A stretch of DNA of 64,000 nt from Gracilinanus agilis (taxonomy: Eukaryota). Of this stretch, positions 33,164-58,225 are shown in pieces (within the stretch, counting starts at the first letter, position 1; every line of letters starts with the position of its first letter). The stretch is from positions 784,204,020 to 784,268,019 of the forward strand of contig NC_058130.1 in NCBI RefSeq assembly GCF_016433145.1. The letters run 5' to 3'. The position numbers and the translations under genes were made by a program. A model generated the notes under the pieces. That model was not told the DNA's origin. It saw only the letters and a list, made by a program, of their open reading frames with translations, and made no database searches.

Positions 33164-34290
<1,127 letters not shown>

Positions 34291-53659: not shown

Positions 53660-53802
53660 GAGCTGCACTACATTTTCCCATGGCTTGTAGAAAGTATTTT
53701 TGGCAGTTTGGATGGCATCCTGGTTGGCTGGAACCTCCGGTGCCTGCAGGGAAGAGTGAACCCCATCGAATACAGTATTGCAATGGAGTTTCTAGACCCC
53801 AG
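53660..53802 (+). CDS. SMPD4: SMPD4 exon 4 (followed by a GC donor)
   Basis: [47 protein letters not shown]+AG|GCAAGT; 143 nt. Confidence 0.94.
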
Positions 53803-53837
53803 GCAAGTGGATTTTCTGCAGCCCCGGCCATGGGTGA

Positions 53838-54119
<282 letters not shown>

Positions 54120-54594
54120 TGAGAGACTCCCTCATGCTCTGCAATAATCACACTTGGCCAGAATGGGTGGGAGAGGTGCCTGTGTTTGTGGGCGAAGCAG
54201 GAGTAAATGGTATGAGTTCAGCTGTGTTACCCCAAGCTATTCCTGTGGCCGTCACGTCTCTCTTTGCTGAAAAGCCTTCAGTGCTTCCTCATTGCCCAGG
54301 GAAGGACATCCCCATTCCTTACTCTGGCATTCACGGCCCTTTCAGCCTGACCCCAGCTTCGGTTTGTGAGCATGTCCCACTCTCGTCCTGTTCTCTACAG
54401 CTGGAAAATGCCCTTCATCCCCACTGTGCCTGCCTCTCCTGGCACAGCCTTCTACGAGGGAGGCTGTGGATGTGCCCCCTACTGGAGAGGCAGCTCACAC
54501 AGGGCAGCACAGTCTCGTCAGGCCCTGGGGCTTTGTGTGTGGTGTGGCCAGGGCTTAGGGTGAACTTGGCCTCATTGACCCCCCTCTCTTTCAG

Positions 54595-54703
54595 GAGCCC
54601 GTGAGAGCCTGCATCCAGGAGCGGGTCCTCCCGGAGTGTCCACTGTACCATAACAAGATCCAGTTCCCCCCCGCGGGCGGCCAGGGCCTGCACTTGGCCC
54701 TCA
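54595..54703 (+). CDS. SMPD4: SMPD4 exon 6 (followed by a U12-type donor)
   Basis: ttcag|[36 protein letters not shown]+A|GTATCCTTT; 109 nt. Confidence 0.93.
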
Positions 54704-54811
54704 GTATCCTTTCCAAGCCTGGGGTGGGGTGGGGGATGGTTGGGCAGGAGGGGGTGCCCACTGGCTTCTCCTGGGGCCTATGTGCGCCTTTGTCCTTGAC
54801 GCCCACCTCAT

Positions 54812-54864
54812 ACCCGTTCGAGTATTACATGTTCTTCTTCGCCCTGAGCCTCATCACGCAGAGG
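54812..54864 (+). CDS. SMPD4: SMPD4 exon 7
   Basis: AC CCG TTC GAG reads (N)[17 protein letters not shown]; donor AGG|GTATGA; 53 nt. The preceding intron ends in AT. Confidence 0.9.
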
Positions 54865-56425
54865 GTATGACCAGCTGGCCCTGAGCGGGGGAGGCAGGGT
54901 AGGGGCTGATGAGACCCAAGGAATGGGGGTGCTGGTTAGCCCAAGGGGTGTCAGGGTAGTGTTTCTGAGCATCCTGAGACTGGGCTACTTACTTCTTCAG
55001 CCCCAGGGGGGGTCACCCTGCCAGGGCACTGGGGTGAGGGGTGGGGGTAGGTTCTGGGTTCAGGTCTTGCTGAAGCAAGTCACTTCACCCCCGGTGCTCA
55101 GCCCTTAGTGATAGACTGCTACAGGGGTAGGAGGCGTGGGTATAGGAGGGGCCTGAGAGCAATCAGGGGGCACAGACAGACTGGCTTGAGGGTCCTCTGG
55201 GTCGATGAAGGATGAGTACAGTACAGGCCCTTGGGGGTGGTGGGTGTGTGGTGCCACTGGGGGCTGGGTGCAGAGGACTTGGCTGTACAGAGGCAGGAGG
55301 GTGAGGGAAGAGAACAGAGTTTGGCTTTGTTGGGGTTGGGCTGTGGGGGGCTTTGGAGGTAGGTGCTGAGATTGGGGCAGATACAGGCATACACTATGGA
55401 GCCAGGAGGGAATGAGGGGCTCTGAAAATTGAGGGCATTCTGAGTGGGGAGGCCGACCATGGCAAAGGCTGGGAGCGGGGAGATGAGGTTAGCTACAAGG
55501 AACAACAAGATCAGAACAGGAGCTGGGCCTTTGGGGGCACTCTGTGTCCCAAGGGTGGGAAAGCAGGTTGGGGCTGCCCAAGAGAAGACCCCAGAGGCAG
55601 CAGGGAGGGCCATGCTGCGACTTGAGCTTTAGGACCATGGCTTGGGTGGCCAGGCTGGGCAGGTGCGGAGCCTGGGGGTGCTGTAGTGCTGTAGCTAGAG
55701 GTTAAGTACAGGGCTTTGGAGGTGGGTAGGAGCCAGGAGAGGAGAAGGGAGGGAGGCAACGGGACTTCCTGATGGGCTGTGACTGGTGCTAGGGAAGAGC
55801 CTGTTGGGGCCTCTGGAGCACTCCCTGAGTCCTTAGAGAGCAGCCCCAGAGCCCCAAAAAGGACACAGGGGTGGGGTGGGGTCGCAGTTGCTCTGTAAGG
55901 TGACACCCCTGCCCCCTGCTTTCCTCTCTGAGTAATTCATCTCTTCTGGGAGAAGCGGGTCTGGGGAGCCCCTGGTGGTCCTCACACTGGCCCGGGGTGA
56001 CTCCTTCCCCTCACCCTGAGAGATGAAAAATCAGCCAAGCTGCTGGCTCTGGGGTTGTGTCTGCTCTTCCTCTGGGCATTGGGGTTGGGCCCAAAGGTTG
56101 GTGGGGAGAAGGCTAAAGGCCAAGTCTGAAATTGTGGGGGGAAAGACTAAGCATGAACAGCTTTTTGGGGTGTGGGGGTGCTCAGTGGCCATCCCTGACG
56201 GCTAGTAGCCCGTCTCATGCAGGAGAGGTCAGACAGGTACCCTTAGGCTTCACTGGACAGACTTGGTCAGAGATGAGAGGAGGGAAGTTGGGGACACATG
56301 ACCCCCCCCTCACATGGGCCACAGTGGCGAGAGGTGACATTCCTGCCCCATCCCCCAGGCCTCACCCCGCTTCCTGGCCCACTGGCTGGGGCAGGAGCCA
56401 TAACAAAGGCCCCTTTGTCTTCCAG

Positions 56426-56577
56426 AGCTTTCCGATGTCAGTTCATGTCCGAACTTCCGACTGTGCCTATTTCATCCTGGTGGACCGCTACCTGACGTGG
56501 TTCTTACCCACAGAAGGCAATGTCGTCCCTCCCCCTTCGAGCACCCTGGGGTGCTCCATCCCTTCTCCCACTCCCAG
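56426..56577 (+). CDS. SMPD4: SMPD4 exon 8
   Basis: [31 protein letters not shown]...PSPTP+AG|GTGAGG; 152 nt. Confidence 0.95.
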
Positions 56578-58225
56578 GTGAGGCTCCTGGTGCCAGACAT
56601 GTCCTGGGGCCCCCCTTTTGGGGCTGAATGTCTGTGCTCTTGTCCCCTGTCCTGGCCTGCAAGACTGTCCACTCTTGGGCATCCTCTGGCCTTTTAGGGG
56701 CTCACCGTGGATGGAATGTTCTGATTTCCCACATGCTCTCTGGCTGCCAGGAAGCTCGGCCACAAACCCACAGGAGTCTAGTCGGCCCCAGGGCTGGCTT
56801 GGAGACATCCAGGGTCAGCAGCTGCCCGTCTCCTGTGCTCCTGAGGGGTGCAGCGGGGTCAGAGAACACCTCTCTAGTCACCCTCATAAGCCTGCACTAG
56901 GCTGGCCTGCCCTGCCTCTGGCAGCACGTGACCCAGGACTCTGCCAGTACCCCAGCCAGCCCCCCACCTCCCAGGCTCTCCCTCATCTCTGGCAGTACCT
57001 CCATGGGGTGTCCCCCTGTCCAAGTAGTGCCCACCCTCCCATGCGCATGCACACTAGCCCCCACTGTGGAATGTTAAGTTCCCCAAAGGCAGGAGCTAGT
57101 GTTTGGGGGTTTTGGGGAGGAAGTTTCTGCCTGTCCAGGGCCAAGTACCCCCCAGCCCATGGGAGACGCTGCCTCAGGACTGCTCTCCCGCTTGTTAGGG
57201 GGGAGTGTCTGAGGTCAGCGATTGAGGGGGGCCGACCCCAAGCGCCCTCAGCTCTTTTGCTCAGAGCCAGCATTCTAGACAGGCAGCAGGATCGCTGCCA
57301 GTGGCTTTATCCCAGCTCCGTCCTTCTGGCCCTGCGATCCCCCTTGGAGCTGGGCTATGGGAGATGCCCCGTGTGGCCTGGACATTCCTTTTGTCCAAGG
57401 CTGCCTCAGGCCGTTTCTTCTCTGAGGAGGAGGTGCCAGGCTGTTCCTACCCTCCTAGACCCACGTGCCCCACACTTGTATTTCGTGAGTTCTCTGTCGG
57501 TCTCTTTGTCCCTCAGTCTGGCTGTTTCTCACAGTTCACATCTGCTGTTAGACCCTCAGACGGCTCCATGCCGTAACCACTCTTCCTCCCACAGTTAAAC
57601 CTCCCTCCACGGCCATAATTAAGGCCTGCCCCGTGCTGGGAGCTACGATACAAAGTCAGACCCACACACAGCTAAGGCCTGGTTCTCCCCACCCTTCACA
57701 CTCCAAGGGGGAGGGCCCTGATCCCCACCTGGAAGGAAAAAAAGGTGGGGTCACCCCTGACATCCCACAGAGGGTGTGGGAAAGGGGGAGCCTCGCAGGC
57801 TGGGCTGGTGAATCACAGGAGAGAAGGGGAGGGACATTGGAGGCTAGAGAGAGGCCCACTCGTGGGGCTCCGAAGGGTGGTCTGGAGCAGAGGACGGGGC
57901 CTGAACTGGGATGTGGGGGATTTGGCTGCCCCCTTGGATGTCTGTGCACACACGTCCCCTTTCTGGCTGGCACATCCGCCTGGGGTAATGCCCGTCCCCC
58001 CAGTCTAGGCCCCTCGCTTAGACCTTCATCCCTGGCCATGCGTGTGTCACGTGTCCCACGAGAATGGGGCAGGGCCTAGGGAGGCTGTGGGGAAGAGGGC
58101 CAGGCCCCAGGACAGCTCGGACAGCGAGGCGCTGGTTCGTTGACCACACACTGGTCTTCTGACCGAGGCCGAGGCAAGTGCTTGCCCATGTGGCAAGCCA
58201 GGGGCTTCTGGTGGGGCCAGAGTGA

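Follow-up and report, generated by a model that had tools for sequence, protein, structure and literature searches.

The locus examined here raises the question of how an intron that carries the marks of the minor, U12-type spliceosome is removed when its last two bases are AT rather than AG, and whether that ending is a genuine, inherited state of the gene. The intron lies in SMPD4, a human disease gene that is mentioned in rare-disease exome reanalysis and in the arthrogryposis literature. It was studied in a stretch of 64,000 nucleotides from Gracilinanus agilis, referred to below as the window, together with related genomes and with orthologous introns from other vertebrates. In all, the evidence makes it highly probable that the feature is the conserved U12-type intron of SMPD4 in a rare form, the GT-AT subtype, with a predicted cut site after the terminal AT and a presumed dependence on the minor spliceosome.

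A probable U12-type intron ending in AT

Mapping by tblastn with the armadillo SMPD4 protein places nine SMPD4 coding exons between 50685 and 59687 of the window, and the intron in question follows the fifth coding exon seen there. The first-pass annotation had set it after exon 6, a numbering that may include a 5′ UTR exon. It is the one U12-like intron in the part of SMPD4 that the window holds. The remaining eight introns of SMPD4 that the window contains have ordinary ends, GT-AG in seven cases and GC-AG in one. The last of these, a U2-type intron in the region 53801-53930, follows an exon that ends ...GAC CCC AG and has the donor AG/GCAAGT at 53803 (here and below a slash marks a splice junction). 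Some 16 kb before SMPD4, and in the same orientation, lie alpha-tubulin (TUBA3-like) exons (33164-34287, +) that end in ...EEGEEY. The features of the U12-type intron and its flanking exons are collected in Table 1.

Table 1. Features of the predicted U12-type intron of SMPD4 and of the exons on either side, in window coordinates
Feature	Position	Strand	Description
Predicted U12-type intron	54704..54811	+	108 nt, GT...AT termini, phase 1
Putative U12 5′ splice site GTATCCTTT	54704..54712	+	sole RTATCCTTT match within the window
G-runs in intron	54721..54755	+	possible intronic enhancers; detail not conserved
Putative U12 branch-point sequence TCCTTGAC	54793..54800	+	branch A at 54799, 12 nt from the 3′ boundary
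Non-canonical 3′ terminal dinucleotide AT	54810..54811	+	
SMPD4 coding exon upstream of the intron	54595..54703	+	36 residues and first base of an Asn codon; follows ...ctttcAG; armadillo SMPD4 residues 152-187 by tblastn
SMPD4 exon downstream of the intron	54812..54864	+	53 nt; AC (completes Asn AAC) and 17 residues; then U2-type donor GTATGA

The upstream exon ends in ...GCC CTC A, directly 5′ of GTATCCTTT, and coding sequence resumes at 54812 with AC CCG TTC GAG TAT TAC. Joining 54703 to 54812 (…ctcAT/AC CCG) yields the peptide LAL-N-PFEYY. Positions 54800-54811 read cgcccacctcat, in which AG is absent. Ending the intron at the AC (54813) would lengthen it to 110 nt and ending it at the next AG (54822) would lengthen it to 119 nt, both with a frameshift. 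Neither AG nor AC occurs at the alternative boundaries 54811 ± 3k, and among the candidate 3′ boundaries the one at 54811 alone keeps the frame. Since the flanking bases differ at each boundary (A at 54703 against T at 54811, and G at 54704 against A at 54812), the junction cannot slide and the ends of the intron are fixed. The first-pass annotation had described this same arrangement, and it could be reproduced base for base: the coordinates of the intron, the two signal sequences, the branch A and its 12-nt spacing all stand, as do the lack of an AG between branch point and boundary, the frameshifts caused by the AC at 54813 and the AG at 54822, and the length of 108 nt with G-runs in the first half of the intron at the positions given in Table 1.

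The two signals differ in what they contribute. The 5′ splice site fits RTATCCTT at +1 to +8, and its nine-base form, RTATCCTTT, is found once on the two strands of the 64-kb window (0.53 matches expected from shuffles), exactly at the end of an exon. TCCTTRAC alone occurs four times in the window against 5.3 expected; it is not rare, and the branch site is therefore informative by position only. That position, 12 nt from the 3′ end, falls in the expected range of about 10-15 nt, and no polypyrimidine tract accompanies it. With a GT start, an AT end and unambiguous boundaries, the intron has the form of the GT-AT subtype.

Relation to catalogued minor introns

The Minor Intron Database lists SMPD4 among the minor-intron genes of human and mouse (Olthof et al., 2019, PMC6717393, Table S2). 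The mouse entry gives a 5′ splice site 12-mer TCAGTATCCTTT with a score of 94.9, a branch-site 12-mer TGCCCCTTGACA with a score of 77.0 and an intron of 100 nt, and the human entry gives TGAGTATCCTTT (88.0) and TTGCCCCTGACG (59.8) for the two sites (PMC6717393). The window intron is orthologous to this catalogued intron: it interrupts the same gene in the same codon, after the first base of Asn in LAL-N-PFEYY, and it belongs to the same short length class (108 nt here, 100 nt in mouse). Its 5′ 12-mer, three exon bases included, is identical to that of mouse Smpd4 in the database, and frog, snake, fish-like and placental-like sequences keep the U12 5′ splice site as well. The branch site, in contrast, has the full consensus TCCTTGAC here, whereas the placental ones are weaker (CCCTTGAC, scoring 77.0, in mouse and CCCCTGAC, scoring 59.8, in human). 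The window branch-site 12-mer, TTGTCCTTGACG, differs by its last base alone from table entries that score 87.4 and 89.9, and by comparison with these scored entries it would clearly be stronger than the catalogued placental sites. The U12-type GT-AT intron proposed in the first-pass annotation is thus supported both by the DNA itself and by its orthology with a catalogued minor intron.

Natural U12 introns of the GT-AT subtype are few. Four are reported in human and three in mouse, and those of DEADC1 (DEADC1/ADAT2) and SLC24A6 are conserved between the two species (Sheth et al., 2006, PMC1557818). GT-AT, alongside AT-AN, is competent for productive U12 splicing according to Dietrich et al. 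(2005), as their work is summarized in PMC1557818, and the workable 3′ ends reported for introns with G at +1 are AG and AT (PMC1557818). Subtype switching between species is frequent, and tools that expect canonical ends often mis-map such introns (PMC1557818). In later surveys, non-canonical ends account for about 4-5% of minor introns.

The SMPD4 intron resembles the natural GT-AT introns (PMC1557818) in its U12 5′ splice site with G at +1, in its 3′ AT and in its conservation across species. It differs from them in the gene concerned and in being lineage-specific: the other vertebrates fetched have GT-AG at this intron, which lets the direction of change, from AG to AT, be read. Published shifts of terminal dinucleotides (Sheth et al., 2006, Table 3; Parada et al., 2014, PMC4176328, for ACTR10) likewise involve a single-base change in a minor intron that is otherwise conserved and presumably still spliced; however, they set human against mouse or primates, whereas the SMPD4 case sets an apparently marsupial lineage against placentals, a snake and fish-like sequences. 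Judged by these comparisons, the intron is the known SMPD4 U12 intron in a rare form that has been described before. That SMPD4 relies on the minor spliceosome is no novelty, since the Minor Intron Database already records it. What is new is the lineage-specific switch from AG to AT and its long retention together with a consensus branch site.

The terminal T in related genomes

A T/G error at 54811 had been raised as a possibility in the first-pass annotation, and the base was followed in one run and two related genomes. In run X3, from the same organism as the window, 98-100% of the sampled words are present, and one separately assembled contig of 8178 nt spans 53850-56650 with a single difference in 2801 nt, at 54544; it reads T at 54811. 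X3 is possibly the assembly's own sample, so its independent support is weak and the relatives carry the weight. In organism A, which is about 8-10% diverged in introns, the end of a contig from DNA run X12 reads GACAACCACCCCAT/ACCCTTTCGAGTATAC (the junction is also given as ...GACAACCACCCCAT/ACCCTTTCGAG, that is, CCCCAT/ACCC), which places AT/AC at 12 nt from the branch A, the state at 54811 being in this case a loose-end consensus. The other relative, L002, is a Logan contig found via a read-through ORF. Its intron ends ...TCCTTGACGTCTGCCTCAT/ACCCGTTTGAA, or in longer form ...tttgTCCTTGACgtctgcctcAT/ACCCGTTTGAA, with CTCAT/ACCC at the junction and the same 12-nt spacing as in the window. Because three genomes read T at this base, it is not an error, and the terminal T is, on the strength of these contigs, a real and inherited genomic base.

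L002 is deeply diverged from the window. Exon identity to the window is about 82%, and the central part of the intron could not be aligned. In the final 31 intron nucleotides, however, identity rises to 87%, above the value for the exons, and the branch-point motif TCCTTGAC and its spacing are the same in both. As three diverged genomes share the same T, the 3′ end of the intron is evidently constrained. The two sequences have in common a 15-residue form of the exon, and the exon differences between them are mostly synonymous, which indicates that SMPD4 is under selection in both the window genome and L002. The G-run region is unalignable with L002, and in organism A it has about 10 nt of deletions.

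Transcripts and proteins were also sought. Searches of sequencing runs turned up no RNA run from the window's own organism, and run X4 yielded no contigs for this region. Run X1 of organism A, labelled 'RNA?', has even depth over introns and exons of 53850-56650, carries the indels of X12 and has no spliced joints; its contigs look genomic rather than RNA. A query of 90 amino acids covering exon, intron and exon returned two Logan ORFs and no marsupial SMPD4 protein model, a query with full-length goat SMPD4 returned placentals only among the best 120 of 1158 hits, and the hits to an exon-7 query were all placental or sauropsid-like fragments. When metagenomes were scanned for the pattern running from branch site to exon, four matches emerged, all of them unrelated microbial sequences that fit by chance.

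The same runs reveal a high-copy repeat at 55072-55165. Its summed contig depth is about 20,800 in X3, 12,500 in X1 and 23,700 in X12, against about 25 in the flanks, and many loose ends with SINE-like tails are attached to it. The repeat is common to the window's organism and organism A, and we take it to resemble a marsupial SINE. Between L002 and the window, no common repeats were found.

From AG to AT

Orthologous introns were retrieved via ORFs that read into the intron and, for the cobra, through a gene model. Two placental-like sequences read CCCCTGAC...gtcAG/ATCCG (L001, intron of 108 nt) and CCCCTGAC...ttcAG/ATCCC (L006, 87 nt). Naja naja (L003) reads CCCTTGAC...gccAG/ATCCG, with an intron of 803 nt. 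Two fish-like sequences read TCCTTAAAC...tgcAG/ATCCA (L004, 132 nt) and TTCTTTAAC...cccAG/ATCCT (L005, 141 nt). All non-marsupial orthologues fetched (L001 and L003-L006) therefore have AG/ATCC at the junction, and the contrast with the placental-like pair is one of AT/AC here against AG/AT there. The comparison of orthologous intron ends that the first-pass annotation had suggested accordingly separates AT, in the two related genomes, from AG, in the placental-like, cobra and fish-like sequences. The rest of the intron's architecture is shared. The 5′ splice site is kept in all seven orthologues, with the TATCCTT block at +2 to +8 after the A of the Asn codon, and the branch site stands 12 nt from the intron end in each of the three AT genomes and about 10-14 nt from it in the other orthologues whose branch site is callable. 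At the protein level the donor is also conserved in a frog, Ranitomeya, whose protein P0031 reads into GTATCCTT.

Since every non-marsupial orthologue fetched reads AG/ATCC, AG/AT, with Asn encoded by AAT, was the ancestral state. GT-AT arose in what is apparently the marsupial lineage, and it may extend to marsupials as a whole. Two substitutions mark the window lineage: G>T at the last base of the intron and a synonymous T>C at the second base of the exon, which leaves Asn as AAC. Of about 120 SMPD4 proteins compared, nearly all carry Asn at the junction codon.

Several gene models of this region are of interest in their own right. In the Naja naja sequence (CM019165.1, 15655549-15660586), GenBank splits SMPD4 into two genes, one of 232 aa, partial, and one of 561 aa, and in the annotation of the first the intron after the U12-flanked exon is retained. 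The cobra U12 intron is also long, measuring 803 nt where the other species have 87-141 nt. In goat, the partial GenBank hypothetical protein P0037 (Capra hircus) is garbled exactly at the U12 junction (...PTGAGLIWPSVSFYYMFFFAWSLIAQK), and the goat RefSeq model is normal; the garbled model may equally be attributable to assembly indels.

A model of splicing and its alternatives

In U12-type introns, 5′ cleavage is fixed by pairing with U11 and U6atac, and the 3′ site is the flexible one. In the SMPD4 intron, U11 and U6atac would recognize GTATCCTTT, their pairing with TATCCTT setting the 5′ cut, and U12 would pair with TCCTTGAC. The 3′ cleavage would be chosen mainly by distance from the branch A, 12 nt leading to a cut after AT at 54811, and CTC A would be joined to AC CCG to restore the conserved ...LAL-N-PFEYY.... 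A cut after the AC, 14 nt from the branch A, would call for A at +1 and cause a frameshift. The evolutionary counterpart of this model is a passage from ...AG/AT CC (Asn AAT), by way of G>T in the intron and T>C in the exon, to an AT/AC junction that at least three diverged genomes have kept along with a branch site of perfect consensus.

A different outcome, which we consider unlikely, is that the AT end is weak and the intron inefficiently removed. A sizeable share of transcripts would then retain it and carry 36 extra in-frame residues (...LTPTSY) instead of Asn, other transcripts, spliced through the frameshifting AC at 54813 or AG at 54822, would be degraded, and the site might act as an expression throttle. 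The 108-nt intron is indeed open in frame: it amounts to exactly 36 stop-free codons, and exon, intron and exon form one open stretch of 103 codons in the window (54559-54867). Minor introns are, moreover, described in PMC3728624 as generally slow to be removed, and splicing at a non-canonical 3′ end is reportedly less efficient than at AG (PMC1557818). Openness, however, is not conserved. The intron of L002 has 106 nt and contains a stop, and that of organism A, with its deletion of about 10 nt, has about 98 nt, so in-frame openness was rejected as a conserved feature of the intron; the read-through ORFs met in other species reflect the route by which the sequences were retrieved and not a conserved property. 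The perfect branch site and its optimal spacing also argue for efficient use.

Another account keeps removal by the minor spliceosome and moves both cuts. In this register-shifted splice of the AT-AC subtype, which is quite unlikely, the intron would run from 54706 to 54813 (ATCCTTT...CATAC, again 108 nt), and the junction would become CTC AGT CCG, giving LAL-S-PFEYY. Length and frame are preserved by such a shift, and the two lineage-specific substitutions are the very ones that create ...ATAC. Serine at the U12-split codon (LALS-PFEYY) is found, too, in two placental gene models, Oryx dammah isoform X2 (P0056) and Equus asinus isoform X9 (P0117), where it could be a real substitution (A/GT) or an effect of how the boundary was modelled. 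These models show that Asn is not absolutely required, which weakens the case from frame and residue against the shifted splice. What tells against it is the 5′ end. The AT-AC subtype requires ATATCCTT there, and the shifted start, ATCCTTTCC, agrees with the AT-AC consensus ATATCCTTT in only 3 of its 9 positions. The shift would also leave the conserved TATCCTT block displaced by 2 nt relative to its snRNA partners; in all seven orthologues this block stands at +2 to +8 after the Asn-codon A.

Removal by the major, U2-type spliceosome is very unlikely. An intron that begins with GT might offer it a donor, but TCA/GTATCC is a poor fit to U1 at +4 to +6. At the other end, no polypyrimidine tract lies within 20 nt of the frame-keeping boundary, and AG is absent from 54800 to 54820, the next one (54821-54822) causing a frameshift, so that the intron does not have the form of a U2-type GT-AG intron. 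The orthologous intron is, in addition, classed as minor in human and mouse. Least credible of all is an assembly error or private polymorphism that would hide a G at 54811 and an ordinary GT-AG U12 intron, for although G is found in all non-marsupial orthologues and X3 may be the assembly's own sample, T stands in the X3 contig and AT/AC in organism A and L002, and it is not believable that the same base was misread independently three times.

Implications

With the feature read as the conserved U12-type intron of SMPD4 in its GT-AT form, what is understood of the gene and of the minor spliceosome is left unchanged, since the dependence of SMPD4 on minor splicing was already catalogued. The change from AG to AT possibly, though somewhat doubtfully, became fixed before the living marsupials diverged and has been kept since then, with the branch site strengthened to the full consensus. 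If this were true, the intron would represent a natural, long-term compensation, in which recognition of the 3′ end relies on branch-site strength and spacing rather than on a terminal AG, and it might serve as a test substrate for how 3′-site factors such as ZRSR2 read a non-AG end.

As it stands, the SMPD4 intron provides a dated and polarized example of how the terminal dinucleotide of a conserved minor intron can switch, one in which the new ending has persisted across deep divergence. It also bears on annotation: pipelines that demand AG may mis-model the intron, as the first-pass annotation proposed, and correct SMPD4 gene models in the genomes that carry AT would need a non-canonical acceptor.
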